Assembly (NCBI GenBank): GCA_965202585.1
Contig: OZ241834.1
Location: 22,692,001-22,756,000 of the forward strand
DNA length: 64,000 bases
Direction: 5' to 3'
From: Thalia democratica
Taxonomy: Eukaryota
Position numbers and translations under genes: made by a program. The notes below the pieces were generated by a model. It saw only the letters and a program-made list of their open reading frames with translations. It did not search any database and had not been told where the DNA came from. Below are positions 18,401 through 64,000 of the stretch, piece after piece (the first letter of the stretch is position 1; each line of letters starts with the position of its first letter).

Positions 18401-21400
18401 CAGAATGAATAATTCATCTATAAATTTTCTAAAAGCAATCAGTAGCAAAACATTACTTTTTGACTACTCGCGCAAAATTAAAAAAATAATGAAAAAGTCA
18501 ATGAGTTTAAACTGTGAAGAATGTTCTAAAGGTTATTTTATTCCAAGAATAAAATGAGACTGATAAACTGAAAAAAAATAATTTAAGTTCTACTAATTAT
18601 TGGATTTGGAACTATTACAAATATTTAAAAAAAACCTTCACACAGGAAAACAACACAACTTAAGAGTCAAACTCCGTATTAATAACCAAATAAGTGTGAT
18701 AGCATCAATGGAAAATAAAAATGTTACATTAAAAGTAAAAACAGTTAACCTTGAGCAGGGAGTGAACCACGTTGGACATCATGTACCGCAGGTCCATGCA
18801 GTCGAGGAAGGTCTTCAGCGTTTTCAGGGCCTGAACCCTGGTGTCCGGCAAGCACTTGTGATTGGTTAATAAGTTGAGCAATGAGGGCAGGATTATGCTG
18901 ATGTAGTCGTCCAAGCTCACCGCCACTATCTTCAGCGTTTTCAGAAGCTGAAGAGAAAAAAGCGTTACTTCTAAAACTTCTCAGTAAAATTAAACTCGAA
19001 CATAATGTGCGGCATTACAAATAGCTTGCAACAGATTAGTATGAAAATTACATACAAGATTTTTTTTAAACAGACAAATTTAATTAATTAATCTCGTTTT
19101 GCGTAAGAATCGGTAGAAGTATGCAGCTCGTAAAACTTTTAAGAACTTATAAACTTGAGAGGGTTGAAAAAAATTAAGCAGCACAAGCTTGAACATATGA
19201 AAGCAGTGATGTGTAAAACCAATACAACGGAGGAAAAAATAATATTTCTTAATATTTTAATATTTCATTTTTAATTAATTCACACAAACTGCGACACACC
19301 TCCCTGGTGACGGTCTGGTTGGGCGAGGCGTCGAACTCGAGGATCCGCAGAAAGTGGGCGAGGAGGTTGGGGAGGTGGAACTTGAAGTCGGAGGAGAGGG
19401 CGGAGGAGATGGACCTGACCAGCGAAATGAGCGACTTGGTCAGCTTGTCGTTGCCCCGTTCCCACAACTCCTCCACCGACTGCATTATCAGCGTCGTGTG
19501 CTCCCGGATGTGCTGCTTGATCTCGTCCACGATGTCCGACAGCTGCTTCACGAAAAACTGCGAAAAGTTGAATTTTGAAAAGCTTGTTGAGCAGTGTGGC
19601 TGGGTCAAAAAGTGAAAGGAAAAGCAAACAATAGTAATAATTAAAATTTAATACTAGTTCTGTTAGAATTAGCACTTAGCTTGAATACCTTGAGAACCTT
19701 AAGGTGTAATTTATATATATATATACAGGTATTGTTTATTTTTTAATTTGTAAAAACACTGTAGAACTCTACATAAAAATATAGTGAAAAAAGTATAAAT
19801 TTACTATAAAATTAATAATTGTTAAAAATTACTCCAAAAAATAATTTATATTCTAAAAACAAACGCTCGACTAACGTCTTTCTCTTCAAACTTGGATCCT
19901 TTCAAGGCTTTCAAAAAAGTAGGAATTATTTCTTTCAAGTACGGTATGCATTTCGTGCTTATCCTGCCGAACATTGTCACCAGAGCCTGAACTGCAGCGC
20001 TATAAATAAACAATTTTCTATATTTATTACAAGATATAACAAGATAGAATAAATACAACATATCATATCATTATTTTCATTACCAAAACAGTTGAAAGCT
20101 CATAAAAATGTTCTACGAAATTGACAGGCGTCAAAAACGCACGAAGGATCTCTTTTGCACGACTTGAGTTGCTGAAACTTAAAATCAAAACTAACAGTGT
20201 AATTATTTGTAAGCGTTCAAGTAAAACTAAGCAAACAACACTTGTCAATCTTCTGTCCTTGAAACTAAATATCAAAGTTAAACTTTCGCAACTCATCGAG
20301 CGCTGCAACAAAACAACGAACCGGTGAATGCCCCTCTCCTGGGGATTGGACAGGATCTTGATGAGGGAGCGGACGGCGACGATGGTGAAAAACTCCTCAC
20401 TCTTGCACCCGAACGTGATCACCAGCTCGTTCATCGAGTCCTTGGGCAGCTCGTGTTGCTGTGAGTCGATTTTCAATTAAAACAAAAACAAACGGTTTTG
20501 AAATTATGTTTGAACGTCAACTGAAATCTTGAATCGTTTTAACTCTGCCATGAGAAATTAAATTTATTGTTGTTAAAACAGTAAGTATATAGTAACTGTG
20601 AAGCTAAAAAGAGTACAGCTTGCTTTCAAAAAAAAAACTAAAAAAAACAAGCTTTTAAATTTGTTCACTCATGTTTTTCCTAACAATAAAAACAAAACTC
20701 ATTCAAAATTTTTAAATTCTTAAATACTTTAAAACAACATACAAATTAAATTCCCAATAAAAAATTACTTTTTGGTGATCTTGCTCGGGTTTCTTGCACT
20801 GATCCTCTTCCTTGAGATCGTAGAAGGTCATCTCGTCCCTCCGCACCTGAGTCAGCGTCTCCACTCTCTTGTGCTTGTCGTGTATTCCCAGTATGCCCAG
20901 CACTTTCAACACCTTTGGTTTTTTCAAGTTAACATTATCAATACTTTTTTTTTGTGCACAGCCGTATTTTCGGGCTAAAGCATTGTTTTGCATAAAAATT
21001 TTAAATTTTATAAAAAGTCTTATTTATTAGTAGTATATAGTTTCTGCAAATTTTTTTAAATTTATTAAATCATAACAAGTTCACTTTTATTTTAGATTTC
21101 ACATAAAGCCAAGTTAAACTTTACATGACCTAATACAAGTAAAATAAAAATTCGAAGCATGAACAATAATAAAAAAATGTACCTTCAATCTAAACTTCTG
21201 AGAATACTCGTTGGTCACAAAAGAAAGCAACTTTTTGTGCAAATCAGGGTACTTGTGATAAGGCTCGACGACGTACCCGGTGGACTGGATCAACTTACCT
21301 GCGTATAAGTGTATATAGAATAAAAAATAAAAGGATAAAATATGTAAAAACTATAAAAATTTATCTTTTACAAATAGAGAATCTGGAAGCTGAAAAAACA

Positions 21401-36400: not shown

Positions 36401-39400
36401 ATTAAAACTGAGCATCTCATTAATATCTATCAGTAGTTGAATGAAAAATTGTTTTACAAATAAACCAACGAGCCAAAAAAAAAAGGTACAAAATACCGTT
36501 CACGGCCAACTTTTGTTAAAAACTGACCGCGGAGCACCGGTGGAGTATTTTTAAATTACTGTTTCAAATGAAAAGTTGTGTGAAACTGACCGCGGAGCAC
36601 CGGTGGAGTATTTTTAAATTACTGTTTCAAATGAAAAGTTGTGTGAAACTGACCGCGGAGCACCGGTGGAGTATTTTTAAATTACTGTTTCAAATAAAAA
36701 GTTGTGTGAAACTGACCGCGGAGCACCGGTGGAGCATTTTTAAATTACTGTTTCAAATAAAAAGTTGTGTGAAACTGACCGCGGAGAACCGGTGGAGTAT
36801 TTTTAAATTACTGTTTCAAATAAAAAGTTGTGTGAAACTGACCGCGGAGCACCGGTGGAGTATTTTTAAATTACTGTTTCAAATAAAAAGTTGTGTGAAA
36901 CTGACCGCGGAGCATAGGTGGAGTATTTTTAAATTACTGTTTCAAATAAAAAGTTGTGTGAAACTGACCGCGGAGCACCGGTGGAGTATTTTTAAATTAC
37001 TGTTTCAAATAAAAAGTTGTGTGAAACTGACCGCGGAGCACCGGTGGAGCATTTTTAAATTACTGTTTCAAATAAAAAGTTGTGTGAAACTGACCGCGGA
37101 GCACCGGTGGAGCATTTTTAAATTACTGTTTCAAATAAAAAGTTGTGTGAAACTGACCGCGGAGCACCGGTGGAGTATTTTTAAATTACTGTTTCAAATA
37201 AAAAGTTGTGTGAAACTGACCACGGAGCACCGGCGGAGTATTTTTAAATTACTGTTTCAAATAAAAAGTTGTGTGAAACTGACCGCGGAGCACCGGTGGA
37301 GCATTTTTAAATTACTGTTTCAAATAAAAAGTTGTGTGAAACTGACCGCGGAGCACCGGTGGAGCATTTTTAAATTACTGTTTCAAATAAAAAGTTGTGT
37401 GAAACTGACCGCGGAGCACCGGTGGAGTATTTTTAAATTACTTTCAAATAAAAAGTTGTGTGAAACTGCCCGCGGAGCACCGTTGGAGTATTTTTAAATT
37501 ACTGTTTCAAATAAAAATTTGTGTGAAACTGACCGCGGAGCACCGGTGGAGTATTTTTAAATTACTGTTTCAAACAAAAAGTTGTGTGAAACTGACCGCG
37601 GAGCACCGGTGGAGCATTTTTAAATTACTGTTTCAAATAAAAAGTTGTGTGAAACTGACCGCGGAGCACCGGTGGAGTATTTTTAAATTACTGTTTCAAA
37701 TAAAAAGTTGTGTGAAACTGACCGCGGAGCACCGGTGGAGTATTTTTAAATTACTGTTTCAAATAAAAAGTTGTGTGAAACTGACCGCGGAGCACCGGTG
37801 GAGTATTTTTAAATTACTGTTTCAAATAAAAAGTTGTGTGAAACTGACCGCGGAGCACCGGTGGAGTATTTTTAAATTACTGTTTCAAATAAAAAGTTGT
37901 GTGAAACTGACCGCGGAGCACCGGTGGAGTATTTTTAAATTACTGTTTCAAATAAAAAGTTGTGTGAAACTGACCGCGGAGCACCGGTGGAGTATTTTTA
38001 AATTACTGTTTCAAATAAAAAGTTGTGTGAAACTGACCGCGGAGCACCGGTGGAGTATTTTTAAATTACTGTTTCAAATAAAAAGTTGTGTGAAACTGAC
38101 CGCGGAGCACCGGTGGTACTCGTTGTGGCGGTCCTTGAGCCGGTCGAGGGCGCGCGTGAAGTGAAAGTAGATCAGGTCCTTCATGTTGGCTTGGAAGTCC
38201 AGCGCCAGCGAGGCCACCCTCACGGTCAGGAACGCCGCCACGTCCAGCACGGCTGCAAAAAAAAATTCATTTGAACCTTGTCGAACGCTTTTTTAGTGTA
38301 AAATCTATATAAGATGTAACATAAGTATCAAGTTTTAAGTTCAGCATCATAAAGTTTTGTTGTTGTTAAACTCCAAGTTTTTAAACCATAATTTCAATAC
38401 TTTTGTTTTCATTTTGTTTTATTTAATATTTTTACATAACTTCCATTTATTTTGTTCAAAAACTTTTTTCAGATTTGTTTATAACAACTGATGATCTACT
38501 ATATCCCAGTATAGGAATGAAACATTGTTTTGTTGATAATAAACTGTAAAAATAAATAATAGATAAATTGTATAAAGAAAATCCTTGCGGATGTGTACTT
38601 TGAATGTTTGTTTTCGCGTACAAACCGTCAAAACTTGATAAAAATAAACTATTTGACAATGAAATTGAGAGGTAACTGACATTTATTAAACTTATAGAGT
38701 TTGATGACCTGTGAATAATAATGCACTAAAAATTAAAATTACAACTTAAATGTTAGTGTTTTATTAAAGTACACCAATATTTGAAACTTTTCTTTAACAA
38801 AAGTTGGTTGCAGTTTAAAAGTAAAAACGAAATGAAAAACCTAAAATAGACAACTTTATACTTCACTAGTAAAAATAAAACTTACAAAAATCGCTGATGA
38901 CTATAGAGTTTCTGAATGCAATTGAACATTTTTTCATGTGGTCATAGTTCAGCTCGTAAAGGTTCACCAGACTAACTGTTGAAAAATTAATTGATCTGTT
39001 AGTGAAAACAGAGATACATTACTAACATTTAAAATCTACCAGTAGTTAGAACAATATTGACACAAAGTTTACTAAAAATAAGTCAGAATTTATTTGTGTA
39101 AGAGTTGAAAAATAGTTCAAAAGTGTACGTTTAACATGTTTTTTTTTGGCAGTAAATACTTGTTTCTATATTAATTTCAAAACTTTTAAAACCAACAGTA
39201 TTTTTACTTGATGATACTTAATTAAATTTAAAATAAAAAAAACAAAGCTAGCATTATGCAACGTTTTTACTTTACATAAACTTACAACAGTTTAAAATCA
39301 GCATAAAACTAAATCATTAAACTCTAGCACAAAGACTAACTAAAACTCTCATTTGCTAAATACTAGAGACTTTTGTGAAAGAGATAAAACTCAAAAAACA

Positions 39401-45289: not shown

Positions 45290-46310
45290 ATACTATTTAA
45301 AACTGAAAATTAAGATTGACGTTTGTCTGATTGATTTCTAAGCAATACACTTTTCAGTACAGATTTAAATGCTATAAGATAGTTTTGTTCTTTTAAGCTT
45401 TTTGGAATTTACTCTCATACCTTACATCCAAGATATGACAAGGATTTAAAACCGTAAAAACTATTTACTCAAGGAAAAAAGTAATTTGTCTCTGAAAATC
45501 TCGTTGAATGGTTATGAATCTTGTTTATACTTGTAAAGTAAGGATTGAAATTAACAGGCAACATGCTTTTTTTGAATTTGTACATAAAGACTCCTAACTC
45601 ATACCGAAACATGTTTTCAACATTTAAAAATTTTTTGATATTTTTATACTACTAATATTTTCATTCCAACTTTTAAAATGTATGCACCTTACCTTTATTG
45701 ATCTCAGAAATTTTGGTTCTGCTTGCTCTACCCCAACAAAGTAATCCATATCTAACATGACTCATAAGAAGTGAGTTAAAAATGTAATACAAAGAGTTTT
45801 GATTTAAATAGTACCGTATTTTGTATAAAACACCTATTGTCTTTAATAATTTTGTTTTTAATGTTTCAATATGCTTAGACCAATTAAGATTACTGTCAAT
45901 TGTAACACCCAGATATTTATAATTATTTACCTTTGATATAGTTGAATTACTAATTTTTATATCTAAGTTTATGTTTTTCCAAATATCAATCTTGCCAGAG
46001 TGGAAGAGCATGTATCTTGTTTTATTTACATTTATTAACCATCTTGATACGTTTTTTAATTGGGAGTTTAGGTATTCATTATCTTTTTTATATGTGTTTT
46101 TCTTAAATGTTGTATATAATAAAGTATCATCAGCAAAGCTTATGATTTTTAGTGTTGTATTATTCTGTAATTATTGATGTACACCAGAAAGAACAAGGGT
46201 CCTAAAACCAAGCCTTGTGGCACTCCTGCTTTGATACTTTCACAAGTTGATGTGTGCCCTGCAAAATCTACAAATTGTTTTCTTTCAGCATAAAATAAAT
46301 AGCATAAACA
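45290..46310 (-). mobile_element. Decayed CR1/L2-type non-LTR retrotransposon reverse transcriptase fragment
   Basis: RKQFVDF...AGVPQGLVLGPLFFLVYIN (46310-46170), then SFADDTLLY after a frameshift, then NYKYLGVTIDSNLNWSKHIETL...LMSHVRYGLLCWG (ORF 45673-46011) and YELGVFMYKFKKSMLP. Sequence down to about 44450 may be its 3' UTR. Confidence 0.88.
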
Positions 46311-48577
46311 AAACAAGCTTTACAATAATTTTTTTGAAAAGTAGCTATAAAAACAAAAACCTTGAACGACCTAATCATTTTTCTTTTTTGTGTATGTTTT
46401 GACCACTGGGTTTCAATGAGTTGAGAGTTTTCTTTGCCATCAGACACACAATTAAAGTAACTAGAACAACTTAATTAGAACAAATTCAGCATCATTTAAT
46501 AATATAATAAGAGTAACTTAATAAAAAATGTTTAATATAGTAGTTTATAACAATTATATAGTTGGGGTTCCAATAATAATTACTTTGAAAACTATTTGTG
46601 TAGTGAAGTGACTAAATAATTAATCAGTTTTTTTCTGCTCAGCTGACACCAGGATAATTGTGCACACCCTGAAGTATTTACCCCTGGTGCACTCCAGTCT
46701 TGGCATGCATCCATAATACTAGCACTTAATCTCTTACCTCCTGATGGCAGGAACTCTTCTAAAGTAGAGTTCAATATATATTTTATGTGTATTTAATGTT
46801 AGATACTTTTTTTGGATATTTTTGTCAAGGAAAATATTTAATGCTGTAAAGCTCAAAAGTCTTAATTTTTCATATAGTTTTTCCTTTAGAGTTTGATTTT
46901 AACTTTTTTTTCATGTTTTAGATCATTATAATTTTAATTATAGTTGGGTATGCAACTTCATGACCAAGAGGTCTTTTTGTGTACCCAGGTCCTTAAACCA
47001 AAAATTTTGAGCAACTTTTCTTTTTTTTTTTTGTTTTTTTGTTCATTAAACTATATCTATATATGTTGACAACTGGGTTTCAATCTTGCAACAATCAACT
47101 CAGCAAGGTTTAAAAGTCATTAGAACCCCTACACCATCATTTCACAACTTTTTTTTATAATGTAAAAAAATTAACTAGTTTTTTATAAGTATAAAATTTT
47201 TTGGAAAGTCATTACAAGTTAATATTTTTTTAACCAGCTAATACTATATTAGGCGTTTAATAGGAATAATTGAGTGTATTTTGATTCTAAATTTACTATC
47301 TATTTCTGCATATTAACAATTTTCAGGTTTCATAGTTTGGCTTGGTTTTAAACATAAACATCCAACTTAGCTTTATAGTCTGATATAACATGTACTAAGC
47401 TCTAATAAATGAGTCATAGTTAATACTGTAGTTTTATTCCAATTACTTCAATATTTATTATTTATTTAACTTTTCAAGTTTTCCGTAACAATTTCAAGTA
47501 CTATAATTTGTTTAGTTTACTGTTTACTTTTTATATACGTATACTTTTTTGAATGACAAAAAAACGCTCAAAATATTTGGTCCTAAATTCTGGTGCACGA
47601 AGAACCTTTCAGTTATCGGGTCGTTTTAAAGATATGAAGATAGTTAACAAAATAATAATAATTAAAGTAGCTTTTTTCTAAGAAATTCACATCTTTAGTT
47701 AGTATATACGTTGTTTTGTTATTAATTAATAAAAATATAGTAATTACAAAGTTTTTTTTTTCATTTGTAGCTCATTATAATTTTGATTAAGTTGAGCATG
47801 CAACTCGATGGCCAAGACCAAGAGGTCTTTTTGCGTATCCAGGTCCTTGAACCAAAAAACTTTGAGCAATTTATTGTTTTTGTTCAATAAATCACACTTA
47901 CAACATACGCAAAAATTTAAAGTTAAAAAAATAGTTTTATCACAATCAAACTTTTGTTCACATCTTAAGAACTTTTTTGATTGAGTAAATACATTCACAA
48001 GTTTAAAAAATTTCTTAATTATAAAGTTGGGCAGCTTTTACAGTTAGGTTGCAACATTTACCATACAATAAACTTTTACTGAATGTAACTGTTTTCAAAA
48101 TCTTATTTTGTCATGTGTTTTAGAAGAATGTATTTTAAATCTCTTTAAAAGCGAAACTGCAATTAAATAAACATTTTATAGATCCTGGAATTAAATAAAC
48201 ATCCTGGACAAGAAGTCAAGCTGTTTATTTTATCAAAGTAGTGAACTACTCGATAACCGAAGGTTTTTTGTAATTAGTTCTTTGGACTTAAATTTTTCAG
48301 CGCGTTTTTTTCGTCTGAATAAAAATATTTATAAGTTAAAAAATGTAAGTATGACAGCGTTAAGGGAATAAATTAAAAGTGTTATTTTCAAAAATGTTAA
48401 TTATAAAAGAGTTCATCTTACTTTTTTTGCACAAGCTGTTTTCACGTTAAAAATGTCGCAGGTCGTGCGATGACAATACTATTTAAGTCGCCATCTTTAT
48501 AATCGTAATACATATTAGTTTTAATTGATGCATATAGTTAACTTGTAAATAAATAACTGCATGGCTAATCAATAAAA

Positions 48578-48792: not shown

Positions 48793-49304
48793 TCAAATAT
48801 CATAATGTGCCTTAGATTTTTTTTCACTCTTTTTTTTGCAAGTCAAATTCACACCTCTGAATTTCTTGAGGTCTGCTGAAGACTCAATGCAAACATACAA
48901 AAGTTGGGCCACAATCGGTTCGGAAAGTCGGAAATCGGTCGTACCGTGCCCTTCGAAAACCTACAAAGTGTGAATTTTGAGTAAAAAGAAACCAAATTTA
49001 GTTTATTGAGAAGCGTGTTGATTGTTTACTGTTGCTTTTATTGATTAATTTACTATACTTTTCTAGTTTAAAACTTTCTATCAAAGTGGAAAAAAAAGAC
49101 CGATTACAGTACAAATAAAAACAATCAAACGACAACGACTAACAACTTTTTTATTGTTTTCGTCAAGCAGAGTCACCATGCTGCTCGCGTCGTTTCCGTG
49201 CTTGAGAGTGCACGAGAACTTGGTCATGCTGTTGGGGGCGAGAACAGTAAAAGTGTTCACTCGCATTTTGCTAGACAGCTTGATTTTTTCAACCCGCTGG
49301 CGCA
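48793..49304 (-). other. Degenerate discoidin / F5-8 type C-like C-terminal domain
   Basis: IKLSSKMRVNTFTV...TLKHGNDASSMVTLLDENNKKV|VFEGHGTTDFRLSEPIVAQLLYVCIES...GVNLTC resembles the FA58C pattern (IDL...I..I..Q...YS.DG..W...KVF.GN...F..PI.AR..RI...L.GC). Resemblance judged by eye only. Confidence 0.5.
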
Positions 49305-52300
49305 CTGGAAAAAAGTTGAAAAAATTAGGTTTAACTTGTTTCTTGACTGACGGAAGGATTATTTTTGATGAGGTTTTATTGAGATTGTTAAAATGTTAAA
49401 GTTTTGTTAAAGGAGTACAACTAAATTATAGTGTTTTTTGGCAATTTAGTATTTTTTTAAACTTTTTATTTTGTTTAATAAAACAATGATTTTCATTTTT
49501 AGAAAAGTTTATAAGTTTATATTGGATATTATTAGAACATAAAATAAACGTCTACAAAAACGCTCACCTGTTGTTGTTGTTGTTTCTTGAGAGATTTCTT
49601 CATCAGCTTTGGCCGAAACTAAAAAAATAATTAAGAATATTTTGATATAATTATAAACATCTTTTAAATAATGGTTTAAGCTTTAAAAACAGTGTTACTT
49701 AGTTAATATATATCAACTAATTTGAAAACTACAGGTAAAAACAATAATTTAGATAGGTTTTAGAAAACAACTTTTTATATTAAAAGGACAAGTCAAAGTT
49801 TATGAAAACTACCAAAGTTAAAGTTTATATATTCAAACTATACACTTACTTATTTTAAAACTAGTTTCGTTTTCAAACTCGGTTCCAGACCCTTTGCTAT
49901 ACTTAAGTCTGTAATTTTCGTAGCGAATAAAGAATCCAGGGTTGCTCACCGATTCGAAAGACACATAGCTCTGTTTATTTATTATAAATGTTCTGTTATG
50001 GCTTTTACAGCTTTTATAAAAGATTTTTAAAAATCAGTGATAGTATTATAATAACTAAGTTTTTCAAATTGTCCTACTGGCATTACAACCGTCACTGGTG
50101 ATTTTTTTGTCGTGATCATACACTATATGTAAAAAACTATACGCAGTGTATGGTAAAAGTTTTAAAAGTTAATAAACACTTTAAGCAACAACAACGAGCT
50201 GAAAACAAAAGATCTGTTGATTTTTAAACACAAGTTTTGCATGACAAAAATAACCTTGTTGAGCTTGTTGGCCACCACTTTGAAGCTGGCATCGTTCTCG
50301 AATTCAGTTTTGTTCACCCGCTGCCCCAACATGACGCTAAAGTAATCCGCAACCTGAAGGAAGTGGTCCGGACACTCAACCGACTCGAACGAAACTGTCG
50401 AGTCGGTTGCGACGATGCCCCTTCTAAGCTTGAACTTCTGGTTGACCCCGTCCTTGGTTTCGATGATGTAGGCATCCACGGCGTTCTTAAGACCCACGGC
50501 GTAGTTGGGAAAGCTCAGCGGCAGCACCTCGACGCTCGTATCTAGTTGTAAATTGTTCTTTTTAGATTAATCGCGTAGATAATTTGTGTAGTTTTTGAAA
50601 TTTAATGTTGTTATAAAGCTGCGATTGTTGCTTTATATTTAGTGTTAAAAGAGCTCAAAAAATAGAGTAAACAAGTATTGGCTTTATTTATTAGTATACT
50701 TAAAACTACCAAGTTTAAATATTAAAAATATATTTGCAAGTTATTAATTGGTATGGCGATCGAAAAAAAAAAACTGTTTTAAAGCTAGGCTTGTTTTTTT
50801 GAGGTTGTTTGATTCTTTATTTCAAAAAAGGAACAATTTATCTAAATAATTTTTGTAACTTGCCTGTATTTTTAAGCTTAAAAACAGTCCGGATAAATTC
50901 AAATTAATTTATTAGTAATTGTAAAAACAAAATATACTTCAGATGAAATTGGGTCATGGTTTTGAGTACAGATGTATATTATGTATTTAAAAGTAATATA
51001 ATGTTCTAATAAATATTTTTTTTATATAGTTATTATTACTAAATTAAAATTACAAGTAAAATTTGATGATAAATAAAAATATACATATTTTTAAACACTA
51101 ACCAATTTTTTTGAATAATCCCTTAACGGCGTCTTCTCCTAAAATAAATAATTAAGTTTAGTTATTAATAATTTTTACTGTTATTTTTTTAAGTAATTGC
51201 TTAAACATACAGTTACAAAAAAAGCATCTATAAACAAACTAATAAACATACCTTTCGTGATTATAAAGAATAAATTTGTTATTTTTACAAAATTAACTTT
51301 TTATACAAGTTTTTTTTTTTAATAATAACATATAAATGAAATATTCTCCATTTTAATTTTAACTGAAAAATTTGTTTAAAAGATCATTTACTAAAGTTTT
51401 TAACAGCTTTGTTTTATTTAAAAGACCAAAAACTTTAACTTTTTAAGTAGTTTAATAAATTATCGAATATTATAAGACTAAAAAATAATTTAGATAAACA
51501 TAATTACCTATTGTTGTTTCTTGGGAGGATGCGTTATCAGTTTTTGCCGAAACTATAAAACGAGTTTAATTTGAGAATACTTTTATTTATAAAATTAACT
51601 TATTTTAAAACATACTTTAAATTATTCTAACAGTGTTACTTAGTTTATTAAACAAATTAACTTATAAATTACAGCTAAAGAATTTAAATTGAAAACATCT
51701 AATAAAACAACTACTTAACTAAAACGTTCCCAAACCAAACTGTATGTAAACATTTTAAAATTATAGTTTTACTATATTGAAGTACTCTAAACAATCATCG
51801 CACAATCAGAAACTAAAACTTTTGTTTAAATAGCTGGCAAACGATATCTAAAACAAAGTTATTAAATAAACTTAAAAATATACTTATCTGGTCGACTGAA
51901 AATGTTGATATAATATTAAGAACTAAACACCATTTATTCATTGATTTGTTACAAGTATATAAATTTTAAATTTTACTGCAGCTTTTAAAATGAATTTAAT
52001 AATGAAATAGAATTTAAATTACTTTATATTATTTGCTAGTTTAAAAAATAAAAAGCTTAGTATTTTTGACAAAGGGTTAATCAGTATCAAAGTAAAATAT
52101 CTTTATAGAAAAAATAACACTGATAAATATCCAAACTTTTTAAATATACAAAAAAACTTTTCAAAAATGTGATGTGAAATTTGAGAAAACGCAAGTCCAA
52201 CAACCTTTAAAAGTAGATTTCAACACATGATGATGCGTAAAAAAATATAAGAACAGCTTAGCATAGAAATTAGACAAAACTTTTAAAATGTAAAATAAAA

Positions 52301-55300
52301 ACTATCAAAGTTTATATATTTAAAACACACACTAACTTATTTTGAAACTTGTTTCGTTTCCAAAATCAATTTTCAGTCTAAAGTTTTCGTAGCGAATAAA
52401 AAGTCCACGTTGGCTCACCGACTCAAAAGACAGATCGCCCTGTTTGTTTATTACAAACATTATGACTTTTACAACTTTTATAAAACACTTAGAAACTGGT
52501 GACAACCAACTACTTATTATCAACCGCTACTTATTACATTTTGACTTTATCATACATCACAGGTAAACATCATACGTTAGGTATGATAAAAGTTTTGAAA
52601 AACTTAAAAAGTACTTTAAGTACCAACAGTGAGTTTAAAACGAAAGCTCTGTTGATTTTCTCGAGTTGTAAAGTTTGGCGGGTGCAGCAAACACGTTTGT
52701 GACAAACAAATACCTTGTTCGTCTTGTTGACATCAACTTTGAAGCTGGCGTCCTTCTTGAACTGAACAGTGTTCTCCTCCTTCCTCATTTGGATCACGAA
52801 CCCCGCGAAATTGTCAACGACCGCCAGGAAGTTACCCGGCTTCGTAACGGACTCGAACGACACGTTGCCGGCGTCCGCGACGAGCCCCGACTTCAGCTTG
52901 AACTTCTGGTTTACCCCGTCCTTGCCGGTTTCGATGATGTAAGCGTCCACATCGTCCTGAAGACCAACGGCGTAGTTGGGAAAGTTCAGGGGCAGCATCT
53001 CGATGCTCGTATCTTTGATAATTGTTTTGTATTATTTGTTTGATGTATGGTTTATATTGTTAATTGTTATCGTTCTGCTAACTTGTCGACCGAAATAAAA
53101 TGTTATTTTAAAGCTTGCATGTTTTATTCGAGATTGTTCGATTTTTAAAATCACTGTTATTATTGTTTGTTGAAAGATAAATAAAGCGCTCATAAAGTTT
53201 GGTCCTTGGACCTGTGCACGAAAAACATTTTGGTTATCGAGTCGCAAACCACTCGGATACCTTATAACGTCTTGTCCTGGATAATATACGATTATGATGT
53301 AATTTAGAAACAATGTGTTTTATGAGTTTTTGATAAGTTGTCTGTGTTTTCTAGGCTTAATTACCGTCCAGGTTGAATTAAATTTAATTGATTTGTATCT
53401 TATAGTTCAAGTAAAGCTGGTACAAGGTTTTGAGTGTAGTTGTACATTGGATATTTAAAACTTTTTATATTATTGTAAGAATTTGTTGTTATCAACATAC
53501 TTAAATTACTAAATGCATTTAAAGGTGAAACTTACTTATTATATGATTATTTGAATTCAAACAGTTATTAGACACTAACCAATTTTTTTTAACAATTCTT
53601 CAACGGGATTTTCCTCCTTTGATCCTTCTTCTAAAAAATAAAATTGAGATATCAATAATTTTACTTTTAGTTTTAGCTAGTTTTATTTAATCCAAACGCA
53701 TTAAAAAACCAGTTACAGTTTAATTCCACACTGGTGTTTGTTATTTACGATCAAACTATTCATTCTAAACATTAAAAATCTTAATCATATTAGTTTCTCA
53801 CTCAGGATCATCTAAAGTTTTGATTTTTTAGTATTTGAATAAATCTTGTTTTTATTTAAAAAATGATACAAAATCTCTCTTACCTATACTAAAGCTAGCA
53901 TCGTTTTCGAAAACATCGTTCGACCACTTTTCAACTTTCAACCAGTAAACACATTGTCGAATGTAATATCCTGTCCAGTTGACGGATTCAAAAGCTACAA
54001 AGCCCTGTAAAAACACGAAAACAGGTCACAATGTTTTCGTCTTAATCTTACAAGAAATATGTAAGTAGACTGTTTGCAACATACATCATGAAACGCGCCC
54101 ATAACTGGCGTGAAACTTGCGCATTTTCTCCAATCTTCGTCGCTTGACTGCTTCTCCAACTTAACCCAGCAGCCCTTGGTTTGTCTTAAGAAATACCCAG
54201 GAAGTTTTTTGAACTCGAACGAAACAGTACCCAAATCTCCACAGAGACCAGCTCTCAGCTTGAAATGTTGGGAAATTCCGGTTTCGTTTGTAATTTTTCC
54301 CCATGAATCTTTGTCGACACCCATCGCATATTCCGAATGGCTTTTCGACACAAACCTCAAAACTTTATCTAAATAATTTGATTAATAACTATTTTGTTTC
54401 GCAAGTTTAATATTTTTAGTTGTAAAGTTAAAAAATTAAATGTTTTCTAAATCGTAAAATTCTTGTAAGTGTTAAAACAACTTAAACTTTGGAAATAAAA
54501 TGATAACGTTTAAATATGAGTTTGTTTTTTGCTAAAAGTTTGTTTCTAACAACTAAAAAAAGTAGCTTAGGCAAGTCTAAACATAATCGAATCTTCTTAG
54601 ATTTTATAAACTGCGTAAAATATTCCCAACATGTTTAAGTTGTTTATTTTGTTATTCGAACTATTTAAACCAGTAAATATAATTATGAATCAAAATTTTA
54701 TAATGCATTGGTTGTTAAAATTTATTTTGTTTAAACCATACCTGATCCAATGTAACTAGCATCAAATTTGGGAACTTCTTTAGCAACACCTGAAATAATT
54801 ATGTTTTAGTCGAAGTATAAGCTGTTATTTGTTATATGGTGTTAATTTTAGACCCTTCTTACTTATGCTAAAGCTGGCATCGTTTTCAAACGAATCGCTC
54901 GACCCGCTTTCTATTTTCAACCAGCGGTTAGAATGTCGGATGAAGTATCCCGACCAATTGACCGACTCAAAAGACACGAAACCCTGTTGAAATCATAAAG
55001 TAATACGAAACTTACACTTTCTTAGCATTATAAAATCTTATAAACTGTTAGCAACGTACATCATGAAACTTGTTCATAACCGGCTTGAAACTCGCGTCTT
55101 TCTTGAAATTTTCATTGTTTTCCTCCTTCTTTAATTTTACCCAGTAATCTTTGGTCTGCTTCAAGAAATATCCAGGCGATTTGACGGACTCAAACGAAAT
55201 GGTGTCCGCAAGTCCGCAGAGGCCGCGCGTGACTTTGAAATGTTGAAAGATGCCGGTTTTGTTTGTAATCATTCCTCGTAATTGACTCGTAATGCCCATT

Positions 55301-58300
55301 GCGTAGGTCGGGTAGTTTTTCGAGACGAACCTCAAAGCTGTACCTGAAAAATTTAAATGTTAAGCGCTTTGATATTCAGTATTACAATATTTACAAGGTT
55401 TTTACAAAAGGTAATTTAGATCTTTTTCTTAAACTTAGTTTCGGCCGGAGCTTTTTTTTTAATGAAATACAACTGGATCCAGATCCTGTAACTCTTTTTA
55501 ATCGTAATCCCTTTGGAACTGGATCCAGATAATTTAAATCTTTCGAAAATATTAATTTCAAATGTCATTTTTTAATTTATTACCTAAAATTTAAATGTGG
55601 AGCTTTTATAGTCTAGGGGCAAGACTTATCAGAAAAGTCAATCGTTATCCAGGCATATCAAAAAACAAGTCTTATTGACCGAAGCAATTTTATAAAATTT
55701 TACAATATATGTTTTTTTAATCTTCTAAACCAAATATGTATTAAAATAAAAGTCGAATAGCATTAATGTAGACGAATAGTTAAGTTGAAAGCATATTTGA
55801 AAGAGCTTGTCATTGAAATGTTAAGTTTTAGCTCTCTCAGTCAAGTTTTTTTAAGCTAAAATTGTTTTTTTGCTAGAAGGATCGGGACAGACTCTCGGAC
55901 CGTAAAAAGCTCGTTCCTGACCTATGATATTTTCTGACTTTAATGGCTATAAATGAAAAAAAAGCTTAAACTTTAAGTGTTTTAGTTTTAAATTTAACCA
56001 ATTTTGTTTCAAAGAACAGAAGTTGACAACATACAGGTAGTAGGTTGGATCCGTCTTGCGACTAAATTTTTAATTATAAAGTTTGTACTAAACAAAGAAA
56101 CTAAAAATTGCTCGAAAAAAAAAACTTAACAAATCAAAATGAAAGCGTATGGTTGTAGTTCATGTTTATTTTTGTTACAATTTTGAGCTTAGCTAAGTCA
56201 AATAACTGTTTTTAAGTATAGCTTGACGAAATTAAAAGTTGCCTGCGAAAGTCTTAGTCGAAAAAATTTGGTCAATTGTGTAAAATATCCTACCACACAA
56301 GCCATCCAGCAAAATGTTTTGCTCAACTGTTTTATTATTGAAAAGTAGTAAAAAATTAAAATTTTCTACAACTCAGAAATAAATAAAATTAAAATTAACT
56401 CTTTTCATAAAAGATATTTATAACTTCTAAATCAAAGAGAAAACGATTGTAAGTATTAATAAACATACAATTTATATCGAGTCAAACTCTTAAATGTATC
56501 TAATACTGTGGAGTTCCTTATGCTGGATGGTTTACTTGTATCATCCCAAAAAGCTATTTTAAAGCATAGTGCGCATTTTTGTAAAATACTGATGTTTTGC
56601 TCACACGAATATAACTATTGCTTATTTCGACTAGTTGCACCCGGTTCCGGCCTAAATGCTGGACTAAATTTTAAATAAAAATCCAGCTGGATCCGACTAC
56701 TTTTAAGAAACCAGAATATTGGCGTTACGAGAACCTCGAAGTGTGGTAGATCACACTTTAAGCGAGTCTAGAGTTTGTTTTCATTTCTTAAAAGGTTAAT
56801 TTGCTTAAACTTTATTTTTTCTACTATCAGATTTATACGAGTGTTTTCAAAAAAGTTGTTGTTAAGCTTAACACATCAGTTAATAAAGTAAATTCGAAAA
56901 AAAACACACCTGATGTAATGTAACTATCATCGAATTTCGGAATTTCTTCAGCAGCAGCTAAAATAATTAAATAAAAAATTAACAATATTAAATAAACAAT
57001 AGCATTAACAAATGTATTAAAGCAAGTGCAAAGCGTGTTTATGCAAAATCCTCATCTTAGACATTTCTTACTTATACTGAAGCTCGTGTCGTCTTCGAAC
57101 AAGTCGCCCGACCCCTTTTCAACTTTCAACCTGTAATCGCCGTGTCGAAGGAAGTATCCCGACGAGCTGACCGATTCAAAAGACGCGAAGCCCTGTTGGA
57201 AGGTAGCGTGAACAAAAAAACGCTTAAAGTTTATCTCAAGCTACAAAAGCAACGCACGTCGTGGAACAAGCCCATGACCGGCCTGAAGCTGGCACCGCTT
57301 TTGTACTTCTCGCTCGGTCTCCGTTCCGTCAACTTCACGTAGCTGTCTTTGCACTGCTTCAGGAAGTGTCCCGGCGACTCGATCGACTCGAACGAAACGG
57401 TTCCCGCCATCCCGCACAGGCCGCCCACCAGCTTGAAGCGCCGGAGCGCGCCCGTTTTGTTTGTTATGTTCGCAAATCGGCAGTCATCGACGCCAATCGC
57501 GTAGTCCGGGTGGGTTTTCGGCACAAAAGTCAAAGCTTTGCCTGAAACGTATGAACAAATGATAATTTGTTTTGCCAAGGGTTGATGTGTTCTAAATACT
57601 TACGTTAAAAGTATTGTAACGTTGAAAAACACTATTTCTGTAGTTTTGCTCACTTTTAACTAGTACTTTAAAAAAATTAAAACAAGTTTAAAGGTTGTTA
57701 GTTCTTTAAATAACTTAAACTGTATGTGCAAATTACACTCGTCTTAACTATATTTTTCTAATAATGAGTTTGTTTAACCTAAGTTTTATGAAAGTTTTCT
57801 AAAGTTCAATACGTCAATAATAAAACTTGATGCAATTTAAATTGTCACTTAACCAGTCGGTTGGTTTTTAAACTTACCTTCTGTGATGTAACTGTCATCA
57901 AACTTGGGAGCTTCTTCAGCAGTACCTAGAAAATTTTTAAATATTTTAGTGGTAATTAAAACTTTGTTTATGTTTTAAGCTTTATTTTATTTTCTTACTT
58001 ATACTAAAGCTGGCATTATCTTTGAACGAGGCGCTCGACCCCCATTCTATTTTCAACCAGTAGTTAGAATGGCGAATGAAGTATCCTGGCCATCTGACCG
58101 ACTCAAAAGACACGAAACCCTGCGTAAGAAGATGATAAAAACAGTTGAACATCATGATTATCATCAAAACATGCTTTGAAGTTATGAATTATATTACTGT
58201 TGTTATGCTTATTTAGCGTCAAAAAAAAAACGTTTAAAATATTTGGTTATTGGACCTGGCGGACTAAAATCTTTTAGTTATCGAGACGTGACAAATCGAA

Positions 58301-61300
58301 TACTTTTTAACATAAAAACTAGGACAATTAGTATAAGTAATTAATATAAGTCCAGGACAGTTAGCATATGTTATTAAGATAAGTTATTAATATAAGTCCA
58401 GAACAATTGATATAAGTAATTGATATAAGTCCAGGAAAATTGATACAAGTAATTAATATAAGTTAAATTGATATGAGCAACGTACTCCGTGAAACTTGTT
58501 CATGACCGGGTGAAAGCTGGCGTCCTTCTTGCCTTCCTCATCCTTGATTTCCTCCAGCACCAGCCAGCTGTTCTTCGTCTGCCTCAGGAAACGTCCCGGC
58601 CACTTCACCGACTCCAGCGAAACGGAGTCCGCGTCCTTGCAGAGGCTGGCACTCACCTTGAAGTGCTGGAAGATTCCGGTGCGCTTCGTGATCTTTCCCC
58701 AGTTGCAGCCGTCGACGCCCATCGCGTAGTCCGGGTAGTCTTTAGACACGAACCTCAGTGTCTTGCCTGGAGCGTTTGAACAATAAATATTTGATCATCG
58801 TTTGAGATTTTATCGTTGGTTTTTGCGAAAGAATAACATATTTTTAGTTGCTAAGATGTTATGGATTAAATTTTTTTTTTGAATGTTTGAAAATCGATGT
58901 TGCTGTTGCTTATCTTTGTTAGTAGCGGCAAATTTTACATGAAACAAGTAAATATGTCGTTGATCGTTCTTAAAATATGAACTTAAAACGTATACAAAAA
59001 TTTATGATTTGTTTAAACATATTATTTGATTATTTTTAATTTTTAAGTTAATTTTTTATACGTATTCAAAAAAAAAAACAAGATACATTTGTAGGTGTAA
59101 CTTATTTATAGTAAGATTTTAATAACCAGCATATTTGTTGAATACTAACCGAGATGGCTGTAAAATTCACTAAGGGGTTCGGCTTCTCCTGCAATTAAAC
59201 AATTTAGTTTACGTATCAAAGATATTTTACTATTAGTTAATTTTTTCTTTTAAATCAAAACATTTATACAAACAAATTACAGCTCGTCTTTCATATAAAG
59301 GTTGTATTAATTATCTCCAACCTATTACGAATTTTGAAAACACGCTAAACCTAAATGACGTTAACTCACTTATTATAAAGCTTGAATGATCTTCGAAATC
59401 TTTTCCGTTTCCTTCTTTTAGCTTCAAACGGAAGTCCCCGTGACAAATAAAGTGATCTGCATAGTTAACCGATTCAAAACGAACGCGCCCCTGCAAATTT
59501 TGGTTGAAAATTTAACAAGCTAAACCAAACTTCAAACTGGGGGCAGAAAAATTTTCTGAAGTACGGCTTTGAGCGCCGTGACGCTTTTTTAAGTTATGGT
59601 ATAAAACAAAGAAAAGGCTCTTTCAGACCGAAGCAGTGATGCAATGACCGTTTTATAAAAACTGCTCAGTATATTGCAAACCAAGTCTAGAGCACGTTTC
59701 AAAATATTCTTTGTTAAGTTCTTTACTTTACTTGCTTTGCATATTAGTTTTTAAAATAAAAATACCTTTGTTGATAAAATAAAATTAATGTTGGTCGGAC
59801 CCGTACGCTGTCAAGCCCCTGCTCTGCACTTTTTTAAACCGTTACAAAAGCATAAAGGCTTCGTTTATAAACTCACAGGAATGATAATCATAAAGCGAAG
59901 AGTGGTTTAAAAGCTGAAAAATTAGTTTCTAAAGCTTTAGAAGCCTGAAAACAAATGCTGGGCGGACCGGATCCAGCTAGGGACCCTCGTTTAATTTCGT
60001 CATACTTTTATTAACACTACCGTTACAAATGCAACGAACCGTCTTAGTTCTGCTCGGGTAGAAGCTGACGTTCTGCTTGAACAAGTTCGTGCCGTCGTCT
60101 TGCGCCGACCAGAGCACGAAGTCGCCGTGCTTCAGAAAAGTCCCCGCATTGTTGGCAGACTCGAAGGAAACGGTGCCCGGAAGGCCGCAAACTCCGCGCA
60201 CCAGCTTGAACTTTTGGTTCTGGTCGCCGTTGTTTTTCATGATGTAGGCCTCGTTGTTCTTGACGCCGAACACGTGGTCGGGAAAGTTGTAAGACGCGAA
60301 CCTCCAGTACTTATCTGCAGTTTTTGTTTGAGTTTATTTGGTAAAAAAAATCATTGTTCTGTCGCAACAATTTTACAAGTTTTTTTTGAACACTCCACCT
60401 CTGTGTTTAACAGTGAGTATATAACTAGTTTTCAGCAAGTGATTTAATATTTTTTTAATTAAAAAATAAAAAGTTAGTATGTAAATAACTTATTCGTTGT
60501 TTTAATTGGTTAAGTATTTGTAACTTTAGTAAGACTGAGACAAAAATCAGTTATAAAACAAGGTTTCAATTATTGTGTTTTATACTATCTTAAAACTTAA
60601 TTGAACGAAAAACAGTAGTTGACAATCTGTTTTGTTAAAACAGTAATTACTTTTAATTTTTTAAATAGCATCTTCGTAGTCAGTTCTTTAGTAAATTGAA
60701 TGCGTTTTTAAAAACAGCAACATTTGTTGTTACAACATTAATTCGTAAGTAGGTATATTTTTAAAGTCAACATATTTGTTTGACACTAACCTATTTTGGC
60801 ATAAAATCCTTCGAGGGGATTATTTTCTCCTGCAATTAAAAATAATTAATTTGTTTATTGATAATTGTTACTGTTACTTTTAATTAAATTTTAGATAATC
60901 TGAAAGCTTTCAAAAACTGTATACAGTTAAAATTTAAAACAGACGGTGTTTGTTTTTGTATTTATATAGTATTACCTCGAAATGCAACAAAATATATTTA
61001 GCTTTCAATAGTATTTACTGTTAGTTTTAAGTTTTTTTTAGATAACCCAAACATTTTCAAAACTACCTCTTTCATTTATTTGTTAAAAAAGTGTTATGTA
61101 CATTTTTTTGTTTTAAATATTTATTCGAAATACTGCAAGTTGTTTATGTCAAACTCCTCCCACTTATTTTGAAGCTGCAGTGGGCCATGAAGTCGTCTCC
61201 CGACCCGACCTTGAGCTTCAGCCTAAAGTCCTCGTGGCAAATGAAGAGACCGGATTCCGTGTACGACTCGAAAGTGACGCACCCCTGAAAACAAAACAAA

Positions 61301-64000
61301 AGAATTGCAACCGAGCCGGAGGTGGAGAGACGTGGAGCTTAAAACGTGCATGAAAAAAACAACAACGGAACGAACCGTTTCTGTCATGCTCGGGTAAAAG
61401 CTGGCGTCGTTGAAGAACTGAGCCGTGCCTTCCACTGCCGCCAAGAAAACCGTATTGTTGCTGTTTCTTAAGTAAGAACCGCCGGTGGACACGATCGAAA
61501 CGGCTTTAGAGTCGCCGCAGAGGCTGGCCACTATCTGGAACTTCTGGCTCTCCCCGCCCGTCAGCCGATTGATGTAAGCTTCGCCGGAGTTGTTGGCGCT
61601 CCAAACGTGGTTGGGAAAGTTGAAAGACGAAAACATCAGTGTTTTACCTGGGTTTGTTTTTTTTAGTTTTGCGTCGTTTTGCATAAAATTACATGTGACA
61701 TTATGCACGTGGAAAAGTTTCTCTACATGTGTATACAATAAGGAGGGTGGAAAACTAGATATTGTTAATTAAAACGTTTCATGGCATAAAATTGAAATTT
61801 ATATCAGATAAAGATATATATGTATATATATGTATATACTAAAAAGTTCTCTATGAAATACTTTTAGTAAAAGTATGCGTAAATAAGTATTTTTTTTGTT
61901 CATTTACTACTTCAAATATGTCTGCTAAAGAAAAATAAGTTTATGGTTTTTAAATAAATACTTTATTTTATTATAGTTTTCATTTGTTTTAGTGTTATAA
62001 TTCTATTTAGATTTAAAATCAAAATACCAACTTTATAAAGTAATATTTAATCTTAACTTCATTGTAACTTAAATAAAAACTTGTTTAATTTCTACTTCTA
62101 ACAGTATTATTTTAGTTCTAACTAACTTTTAAATAGTTTTAATAAAAAAAAATTATACTTACATAAATCAGTTTTTTGATTTAGTCTTGGTAAAATTTTA
62201 GCTTAAATTTAGTTTGATTTTTATCTAGTTTTTTTTAAAACTTTGTTAGTAAAGATTGAGTTAAAATTGCCACGAAGCAAAACGAATTTATTTATTAAAA
62301 GTAAAAGTTTGAAACAAATGAGTGATAAAAGCAAAATGTCTCACTTAAAACAATTTTTTGTTTGAAAAAATTTTAGTGTCTTATTTGCAGTAAATCTTGT
62401 CTGATGAAAATTTTCAAAAAATGAACACGTAAGTTATAAAAATATGTTGTGACTTAAACACTAAAACACACCCGATGTGACGTAACCGAGATCAAATTGC
62501 TGTTTTTCTTTTTTGACATTACCTAAAATTGTTACAATTTAGTTGAAAATAAATTTAGTTTGAAAGTTTTTTACGATCTATTTTACATCTGCCTTACATA
62601 TTTTAAAGCTGGCATCGTTTTCAAACAAATTTGTTGTTCCCCTAGCAATTTTCAACCAGTAGTTAGTATGTCGAATGAAGTATCCCGGCCAATTGACCGA
62701 TTCAAAAGACACGAAACCCTGTTAAAATTTAACATTAAACAGTGTTGAAGTTGATAAAATTGTAAACTGTTAGCAACTTACATCGTGAAACGCGTCCATA
62801 ATTGGCTTGAAACTTGCGTCCTTCTTGAAACCTTCATCGTTTTCTTCTTTGTTTAATTTCACCCAGTAATTTTGGGTTTGCCTCAAGAAATGTCCGGGCG
62901 ATTTGACCGACTCGAACGAAATGGAGTCCGCTTCCCCGCAGAGACCACGTCTCAGCTTGAAATGTTGAAATATCCCAGTCGAACTTGTGATTTTTCCCCA
63001 ATTCCATTTACTAACACCCATTGCATACCTTGGGTAGTTTTTCGACTCAAACCTCAAAGTATGCTCTGAAAAATTTCTATTATGAATCCTTTGTTTTGCG
63101 GATTTCAGATGCTTTTTTGTATGCGTTTATAAGAAATTAAATTGTAAAATATTTTAGAACTTTAAAAAAAAAATTGTTTGAAAACCATGTTTTTGTTATT
63201 TTGCTTACATTATTTTTCAATTAGAATTCTTTTTTAGAAGTCTAAAGTTTGTTTCTTTTATTTTTACTATCTACATCGTGAATTAAAATAACTATTTACT
63301 AAAACAACTTTGTTTTCGTAACCATTGAAATTAGTTACATCAAACTTAATGAGAAAACTAAAAACTGTTCATCACACAAACTGTTAAAGTACCGTTATAA
63401 TTCAAACAAACCATTTTGAATGTAGGTTAAAAATGCAGTATCAAAGGCGGGCACGGATCCGGCGTCACCTAAAATGTATTTTATTGTTTCAGTGAAAATA
63501 CAAAACTCCTTCTAATTTTATCAGATCGTTCTTACTTATACTAAAGCTCGCGTCGTTTTTGAACGAGGCACTCGACCCCGTTTCAATTTTCAACCAGTAG
63601 TTAGTGTGGCGAATGAAGTATCCTGGCCAATTGAACGATTCAAATGATACGAAACCCTGTGTAAGAAGATGATAAAAATAAAACTGCATTGCATTTACCT
63701 AACGTTAAATTTTTTTAAAGTTTAACACACTTCGTGGAACGCGCCCATGACGGGCCGGAAACTAGCGTCTTTCTTGAAACTTTCAGTAGTTTCTTCTTTG
63801 CTTAATATCACCCAGTAGTTCTGGGACTGCCTTAAGAAATACCCAGGCGATTTGATCGACTCGAACGAAATGGTGTCCGCATTTCCGCAGAGACCACGTG
63901 TCAGCTTGAAGTGTTGAAAAATTCCGGTTTTTTGTGTGATTTTTCCCCAGTAAGCATTGTAAATACCAATTGCGTAGTCCGGGTAGTTTTTGGACACAAA
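48793..64000 (-). CDS. Poly-AbfB (CBM42-like beta-trefoil) repeat protein with degenerate C-terminal F5/8 type C-like domain; 5' end lies outside the window
   Basis: 33 exons in the window, about 4,850 nt. Cassettes as exon A / exon B / linker: 63731-64000 (partial) / 63536-63656 / 63412-63468; 62782-63065 / 62598-62718 / 62472-62522; 61376-61647 / 61164-61284 / 60791-60829; 60040-60314 / 59370-59490 / 59150-59188; 58486-58766 / 57999-58119 / 57878-57925; 57258-57541 / 57072-57192 / 56910-56957; 55060-55343 / 54863-54983 / 54742-54789; 54085-54368 / 53884-54004 / 53580-53630; 52714-53012 / 52337-52439 / 51508-51552 plus 51103-51138; 50255-50541 / 49850-49970 / 49568-49618. Terminal exons are 49144-49304 and 48793-48960 (TGA). 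The recurrent motif SFESxxxPGxFLR[H/Q]...FxxDASF is the AbfB/CBM42 subdomain signature. Confidence 0.88.
58325..58475. repeat. Degenerate short-unit intronic minisatellite
   Basis: Repeated (g/a)atataagt(ccagga/aatt) blocks just downstream of the donor at 58486. Confidence 0.7.

Follow-up and report, generated by a model that had tools for sequence, protein, structure and literature searches.

The 64,000-nucleotide stretch of Thalia democratica DNA analysed here (contig C10:22,692,001-22,756,000, hereafter the window) ends inside a minus-strand gene that carries 13 tandem AbfB (PF05270) modules, ten of them within the window and three further upstream. On its predicted splice structure the gene is intact, protein-coding and rich in introns. 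Its product is probably a secreted, rod-like, multivalent glycan binder which would cross-link or coat glycans in a secretion. Because the gene is known from genomic sequence alone, this function rests on homology. A sequence-only reading of the window had already proposed a multivalent glycan-binding role; we still find this the most reasonable interpretation, although the ligand and the binding itself are put forward on the strength of sequence comparison.

We numbered the modules M1 to M13 in gene order. Those in the window, M4-M13, span 49850-64000, all on the minus strand, and M1-M3 occupy C10:22,756,505-22,759,237, beyond the window end and thus upstream in the gene. The 20 kb that follow the window end were also examined, and nothing AbfB-like was met there past M1-M3. 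Between 49.8 and 64.0 kb, stop-free segments of the minus strand alternate between a type of about 95 amino acids (aa), reading ...LRFVSKNYP...SFES...KKDASF..., and a type of about 40 aa, reading GFVSFES...RHxNYW...NDASF. Indeed, each module consists of two exons, A and B, with GT/AG splice sites throughout. Exon A (typically about 284 nucleotides, nt; range 272-299) is entered at phase 1 and left at phase 0; exon B (121 nt, or 103 nt in M12) is entered at phase 0 and left at phase 1. When the 26 module exons were spliced they yielded 5,238 nt, or 1,745 aa, with zero stops, in which the 13 modules of 130-135 aa apiece abut without linkers. Two extra 3′ exons, phase-matched to a strong donor at 49850 (the end of M13), add a 109-aa tail and bring the full model to 1,854 aa and 28 exons. 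The 3′ end had previously been taken for AbfB as well, whereas these last two exons encode a different, non-AbfB sequence. A read-through past M13 ending in ...KISKCIV* was dropped, since the tail of a plankton transcript, P0174, matched the two downstream exons instead. The stop codon at 48793-48795 coincides with the position at which the sequence-only reading had the gene begin on the forward numbering; the more than 1,600 aa which that reading thought visible come down to about 1,450 coding residues in the window. The window DNA around the gene is AT-rich (GC fraction about 0.27-0.35), and no run of N was met in the sequence analysed. The predicted model appears to be complete apart from its first (5′) exon, which is putative. 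The parts of the gene that lie in the window, from the 3′ end upwards, are as follows (core, d1 and d2 designate module subtypes):

48793..48960, minus strand: terminal coding exon (48960-48796) and stop (48793-48795), second half of the C-terminal tail; tblastn match to the P0174 tail (31 aa at 52% identity, E 6e-7); acceptor ttgtag|GTT, phase 0.
49144..49304, minus strand: exon C1, entered at phase 1 and left at phase 0, with the first half of the non-AbfB tail; acceptor ttttccag|TG, donor GTT|gttagt, in frame from M13.
49850..50541, minus strand: M13, divergent subtype d2 (A 50541-50255, B 49970-49850); PF05270 E 3.5e-8; sister to M12 and domain 2 of P0174.
52337..53012, minus strand: M12, divergent subtype d2 (A 53012-52714, B 52439-52337); PF05270 E 5.1e-9; splice sites and tree.
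53884..54368, minus strand: M11, core (A 54368-54085, B 54004-53884); genome profile scan, splice sites and tree.
54863..55343, minus strand: M10, core (A 55343-55060, B 54983-54863); genome profile scan, splice sites and tree.
57072..57541, minus strand: M9, core (A 57541-57258, B 57192-57072); PF05270 E 4.5e-7; splice sites and tree.
57999..58766, minus strand: M8, core (A 58766-58486, B 58119-57999); genome profile scan, splice sites and tree.
59370..60314, minus strand: M7, divergent subtype d1, called module 4 in the sequence-only reading (A 60314-60040, B 59490-59370); PF05270 E 3.5e-13; exon B donor AA|gtgagt; sister to M6 and domain 1 of P0174.
61164..61647, minus strand: M6, divergent subtype d1 (A 61647-61376, B 61284-61164); PF05270 E 2.5e-9; splice sites and tree.
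62598..63065, minus strand: M5, core (A 63065-62782, B 62718-62598); PF05270 E 6e-12 and 7e-9; γ pocket His-Asn-Tyr-Asp intact.
63536..64000, minus strand: M4, core (B 63656-63536, A from 63731 to the window end plus 14 nt beyond it); PF05270 E 3e-12; γ pocket His-Asn-Tyr-Asp intact.

Nearly every large exon tested matched PF05270 above its gathering score (cut-off 22.8 bits), with E values from 4.5e-7 to 3.5e-13, and a whole-genome, exon-by-exon profile scan gave the same AbfB result for the array exons, so that the ten AbfB/CBM42-like modules noticed in the window by the sequence-only reading are confirmed, well beyond what chance would give. Their division into three trefoil subdomains was also borne out, by the three-fold internal repeat of the β-trefoil (α, β and γ subdomains) visible in each module and by alignment to solved structures. 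A profile built from the 13 A exons found the CBM42 of SaAraf43A (3AKF) at E 2e-19, together with those of RsgI5 (9FNK), Clostridium thermocellum CBM42A (3KMV), Aspergillus kawachii AbfB (1WD3) and AtAbf43C (9NXI), and a profile of the γ exons aligned to all three subdomains of 3AKF (E 1e-20), of 3KMV and of 9FNK. Structure prediction was carried out on a module from the closest multi-module relative, P0161 (about 48% identical; 50-row alignment), not on the gene's own spliced module. The resulting AlphaFold model had a predicted local distance difference test score (pLDDT) of 97.9, and Foldseek placed CBM42 structures first, with template modelling (TM) scores of 0.90-0.91 and a root-mean-square deviation of 1.4 Å (3AKI and 3KMV at TM 0.91). 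Sequence profiles, together with the fold predicted for this close relative, make the gene a member of the CBM42/AbfB family. Most core modules contain a single conserved cysteine in the motif RGLCG (for example at window positions 62782-63063, minus strand), and M8 and M9 have extra ones, as seen in the alignments. If the product is secreted, such unpaired cysteines, one per module, might link neighbouring molecules by disulfides.

The array had been described as long, non-catalytic and running off the window, and this description held: there are three more modules upstream, and searches of the 1,854-aa model detected nothing catalytic. The open frames of the 14 kb upstream of the gene gave no Pfam match, to a glycoside hydrolase or otherwise. 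The GH54 catalytic domain (PF09206) had no match in the genome, but control genomes were equally silent, so this blank is weak. The product is not an arabinofuranosidase.

In AtAbf43C, three residues of the β pocket (H70, Y73, D89) and four of the γ pocket (H118, N120, Y121, D136) are described as touching arabinofuranose (PMC12493170), and it is the terminal arabinofuranose that CBM42 recognises (PMC12493170; PMC5802718). We placed the corresponding residues through HMMER alignments at the RHxNY and DA(T/S)F motifs. The γ set His-Asn-Tyr-Asp is complete in M1, M4 and M5 (3/13), and the γ triad His-Tyr-Asp is retained in five of the 13 modules (M1, M2, M4, M5 and M9); one γ residue is changed in M3, M8, M10 and M11, and at least two are changed in M6, M7, M12 and M13. 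In M1-M5 the residues of the β pocket are Gln-Asn-Tyr-Asp, and one residue is inserted there. Across the array its His is replaced by Gln in 10/13 modules and its Asp is retained in 10/13, and the α subdomain has no contact residues. Because the pocket residues are partly kept, multivalent sugar binding by the array is plausible, not established; and because the pockets depart from the canonical set, we infer binding, valency and ligand from homology. Arabinofuranose or galactofuranose would be only the family-default ligand, and the true ligand need not be arabinofuranose.

We therefore propose the following as a working scheme. The product would be secreted and would act as a long multivalent lectin, several modules keeping what is predicted to be the furanoside-contacting His/Tyr/Asp pocket and most others showing conserved variants of it. 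Since so many modules keep or vary their pockets, one molecule could bind many glycan chains simultaneously, and could in this way cross-link glycans, or form a coat on them, in secreted extracellular material (mucus, tunic or adhesive, for example). A four-module homologue in Hydra, secreted with the glue of the basal disc, presumably acts likewise.

The same pockets could be read as those of a structural matrix protein in which β-trefoils line up as rigid beads to make a fibre or a coat, in tunic or mucus, and in which sugar binding has been largely lost. Most pockets are changed, with His replaced by Gln in all core β pockets and the γ Asp counted as lost in M6, M7, M8, M12 and M13, and the modules abut without spacers. 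Furthermore, among human proteins only those of the extracellular matrix contain AbfB (PMC4224354); the domain characterises otogelin (PMC4948705). However, the conservation of the β variant Gln-Asn-Tyr-Asp in M1-M5, along with the five γ triads, is more readily explained by selection for binding than by decay of the site, and we consider a mainly structural role quite unlikely.

The two ends of the protein are less clear-cut than its modules. Alignment of the spliced 109-aa tail with that of P0174 shows 39% identity across 79 aa (E 7e-14), and the Thalia tail is absent from the paralogous AbfB loci of the same genome; a word-indexed search for relatives of the tail found none. Against PF00754 (F5/8 type C, discoidin) the tail scored E 0.012 and 16 bits, the cut-off being 28, its discoidin-like Atlas feature scores were about 0.8, and a structure model built from three sequences (pLDDT 62) had retinoschisin, neuropilin b1 and CBM32 as its best Foldseek matches at TM about 0.5. 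These three hints are weak and concordant, none being significant, and the tail is possibly a discoidin- or CBM32-like β-sandwich. At the other end, a signal peptide had been named as something to look for upstream; the sole candidate in the 14 kb scanned was MAVVVVVVVVVYFQQHFYYK, a poly-valine segment at C10:22,760,947-22,761,007, 1.7 kb upstream, whose codons belong to a (GTT)n repeat and which we treated as unproven. A more specific scenario combines the tail with the pockets: a furanoside-specific animal lectin, anchored by a discoidin-like tail in the mucous feeding filter or tunic of this pelagic tunicate, whose weak pockets would capture microbes or algae through arabino- or galactofuranose. 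We hold this to be unlikely as it stands. If it were true, tunicates and hydrozoans would share a previously unrecognised class of lectins, one that marine bacteria may have supplied through an ancient transfer.

Contig C1093 represents the other haplotype and is 98.1% identical over 10 kb. Between the alleles, the ratio of non-synonymous to synonymous polymorphism (pN/pS) is 0.17 (24 non-synonymous differences against 35 synonymous ones in 21 syntenic exons). The nine core modules have a median ratio of non-synonymous to synonymous divergence (dN/dS) of 0.18 at a dS of about 1.2, and the youngest pair of modules, M2/M4, stands at dS 0.62. Both ratios indicate purifying selection on the gene; the modules are old, and each has been maintained by it. 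A non-functional or decaying tandem array, with frames left open by chance, is accordingly hard to reconcile with the data: 28 exons are in frame without a stop over 1,854 codons, and the allelic and paralogue ratios just given point the same way. Such decay could draw on the candidate status of the first exon, on the genomic nature of all that is known of the gene, and on a possible frameshift in exon B of M6 on the other haplotype, yet we judge it very improbable.

Scanning the 802 Mb assembly gave 94 AbfB exon matches, distributed over at least four AbfB loci that all have the two-exon module. Besides the present gene, these include:

C1:23,567,154-23,590,561, plus strand: about 12 AbfB modules in an array; the corresponding haplotig is C668.
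C1:72,930,902-72,938,567, plus strand: AbfB gene of five modules, preceded by a clean candidate signal-peptide exon, MKFKNLLIVSILVSLDLCDE.
C9:30,890,025-30,890,618, minus strand: single AbfB module flanked by MAM-domain exons, within a MAM array of very large size (C9:30,782,237-30,894,357).

Since the copy on C9 sits among MAM-domain exons, an AbfB module appears to have been shuffled into another secreted protein. The haplotig of the present gene holds an extra copy of M1 (C1093:13819-15867), that is, 14 modules versus 13. The gene therefore illustrates how such arrays grow, with its phase-symmetric two-exon units, its old subtypes and a copy-number difference between haplotypes.

The expansion of the family (at least four loci and 94 exon matches), which is typical of immune lectins, and the copy-number difference would also suit a soluble pattern-recognition lectin or agglutinin serving innate immunity or food capture, which would bind microbial or algal furanosides (galactofuranose, Galf, and arabinofuranose, Araf) and clump or trap cells. 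To our knowledge, these are sugars that animals do not make. The recognition of terminal arabinofuranose by CBM42 speaks for this possibility, as do the canonical pockets kept in several modules and a high valency suited to low-affinity recognition of surfaces. On the other hand, both expression and binding would have to be assumed from sequence, the modules are old and under purifying, not diversifying, selection, and the sole experimental datum in the family concerns an adhesive secretion (PMC5080974). We regard the agglutinin as rather unlikely.

A profile search over 1.84 billion representative proteins returned 1,804 proteins. The best named matches were AbfB-only proteins, all uncharacterised, from Clavelina lepadiformis, Hydra vulgaris and Clytia hemisphaerica; others came from Hydractinia, from a salmon louse, from many unnamed plankton sequences and from bacteria, one of them a 2,546-aa protein of Maribacter (marine Bacteroidota) with several AbfB copies. 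Clear signal peptides were present in the Clavelina, Hydra, Hydractinia and Clytia proteins and in P0184. The rarity of such proteins in animals that the sequence-only reading implied does not hold, since AbfB-only arrays with signal peptides are annotated in all four of these genera. At CP147950.1:17,853,030-17,868,402, Hydra vulgaris has three adjacent AbfB-repeat genes, and because one of their products measures 2,804 aa, very long AbfB arrays exist in Hydra too. The Thalia gene is therefore an unusually long addition to the animal AbfB-only secreted proteins already annotated, not a new kind. Literature searches for papers on tunicate AbfB found none.

We built a tree of 73 domains with IQ-TREE, otogelin AbfB not being among them. 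All 13 modules of the gene and the plankton transcript P0174 formed one starred clade (99/92), in which the nine core modules made up a lineage-specific clade (100/99), M6 and M7 paired with domain 1 of P0174, and M12 and M13 paired with its domain 2. Since each subtype pairs with one P0174 domain, d1 and d2 would predate the split from the organism that P0174 comes from. All 25 bacterial domains (25/25) fell on one side of a branch (91/82), and the gene's modules, Clavelina, Hydra, Hydractinia, a copepod and plankton transcripts fell on the other; the Clytia domain had a long branch and lay with the bacterial domains.

This topology bears on a different origin, in which the array, or at least M7, would be a recent horizontal acquisition from bacteria. 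The idea is understandable, as AbfB occurs chiefly in bacteria and fungi, its distribution in animals is patchy and the Maribacter protein is also multi-copy. The string quoted for module 4 in the sequence-only reading is present and corresponds to the M7 exons (60314-60040 and 59490-59370), but its supposed bacterial character was not upheld: the best matches of this module are the same eukaryotic proteins as those of the other modules, it is sister to M6, and forcing M6 and M7 together with bacteria was rejected (log-likelihood difference 26; approximately unbiased test, p-AU 0.007). Moreover, the model contains 27 introns and a module exon structure in common with Clavelina, the bacterial domains stand apart from a clade that unites the gene's modules with a eukaryotic plankton transcript, and the composition of the gene is that of its AT-rich host. 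By its placement in the tree, M7 is a divergent eukaryotic subtype. We consider a recent transfer extremely improbable, and the gene is not evidence for one. On the domains sampled, the animal AbfB family as a whole may or may not go back to an ancient transfer at its root. Intron positions are not common across phyla, the mapped Hydra gene LOC136089702 (P0002), a neighbour of LOC100202073, having its β and γ subdomains in one exon.

Several observations weigh against the secreted glycan binder that we favour. Eight of the 13 γ pockets and all β pockets differ from the canonical His/Tyr/Asp set, the γ-pocket Asp being absent in M6, M7, M12 and M13. The 14 kb scanned upstream contained no convincing signal-peptide exon, and both the splice model and transcription are predictions made from genomic DNA. 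Exon B of M6 carries a 1-nt insertion in the haplotig (CC to CCC; C1093:8183-8304), which is either a frameshift and null allele or an assembly error. Finally, the parallel drawn with Hydra is one of about 30-39% identity, in another animal phylum.

CBM42 is known almost only as a targeting appendage of microbial plant-cell-wall enzymes. The animal AbfB-only family, annotated in hydrozoans and tunicates, is functionally uncharacterised, and one paper took its domain for an enzyme. The Thalia gene has more modules than any member with counted domains, and the one longer protein is the 2,804-aa product of Hydra, whose modules lie outside that count. M5, with its intact pocket, and M7, which has diverged, are concrete targets for asking whether animals have furanoside-binding lectins.

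A few features unrelated to the array were seen along the way. An open frame on the minus strand (window 45676-46319), which lies past the stop codon of the gene by about 2.5 kb in the direction of transcription, has reverse-transcriptase motifs (...FADDTLLY...) and, judged by eye, is probably a fragment of a retrotransposon lacking long terminal repeats (non-LTR). Further off, a minisatellite at window 36568-38164 (plus strand) repeats a unit coding for a 21-aa string about 25 times in one long open frame, and exon-sized open frames at about 14000-20500 of the window (minus strand; for example 17107-17490 and 17808-18266) resemble, from their translations, pieces of an mTOR-type kinase gene. 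Elsewhere in the assembly, the mitochondrial COX1 gene (contig C1833) reads perfectly only with the ascidian mitochondrial code (AGR = Gly, ATA = Met, TGA = Trp), which marks the host as a tunicate. The best matches of this COX1, at 92%, come from a catalogue of marine plankton metatranscriptomes and suggest a pelagic one. Degraded nuclear copies of mitochondrial COX1 (NUMTs) with many stops occur at C4:56,842,736-56,945,724 and C757:31,294-32,138.

Compared with known systems, the gene has the Pfam family and the three-subdomain β-trefoil in common with the microbial CBM42 modules of SaAraf43A (3AKF-3AKI), AtAbf43C (9NXG-9NXI), C. thermocellum CBM42A (3KMV) and A. kawachii AbfB (1WD3). The RHxNY...DA(S/T)F pocket motif is also recognisable, and the γ pocket is intact in some modules. 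Unlike them, it encodes 13 copies per chain without a glycoside hydrolase, in an animal host and with introns, its core β pockets show the His to Gln change with a one-residue insertion, and its α pocket is devoid of contact residues.

Experimental evidence bearing on the proposed function comes from Hydra LOC100202073 (XP_002159690), whose transcript was found only in basal-disc cells by in situ hybridisation and is among 21 basal-disc-specific transcripts with products identified in the secreted adhesive material by mass spectrometry; it was labelled a glycosyl hydrolase in that study (PMC5080974). It corresponds to our profile match P0164/P0008 and has four AbfB modules, that is, the binding module only; judging from its sequence, the AbfB domain alone does not support a glycosidase. 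This protein is secreted, as the Thalia product is predicted to be, composed of tandem AbfB only and placed in the animal clade of the domain tree, but it has four modules instead of 13, about 30-39% identity and no such C-terminal tail. Among tunicates, Clavelina lepadiformis LOC143450202 (585 aa) was the top profile match (E 4e-83). It has a 22-aa signal-peptide exon followed by four AbfB modules and has in common with the Thalia gene the A/B exon split, with an intron before the γ subdomain; however, it is only about 40% identical, its modules are joined by short linkers and it is without the tail. The plankton protein P0174 (421 aa; source 'merc', ERR1719466) does have the tail and is the nearest relative of M6/M7 by its domain 1 and of M12/M13 by its domain 2, but it comprises two modules only, and the nine core modules are without a counterpart in it.

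Vertebrate otogelin and otogelin-like offer a case of AbfB in a secreted chordate matrix protein (PMC4948705), although there a single AbfB is set among VWD-C8-TIL units in a mucin-type architecture. A functional parallel from outside the family is given by the Hydra PPOD proteins, which have two tandem β-trefoil lectin domains, occur in the cuticle, agglutinate cells and have been proposed to cross-link surface glycans (PMC3531485). Like the predicted Thalia protein they are secreted and made of β-trefoils only, but their trefoils belong to another family (fascin/FRG1-like, not AbfB), number two and are confined to Hydra.

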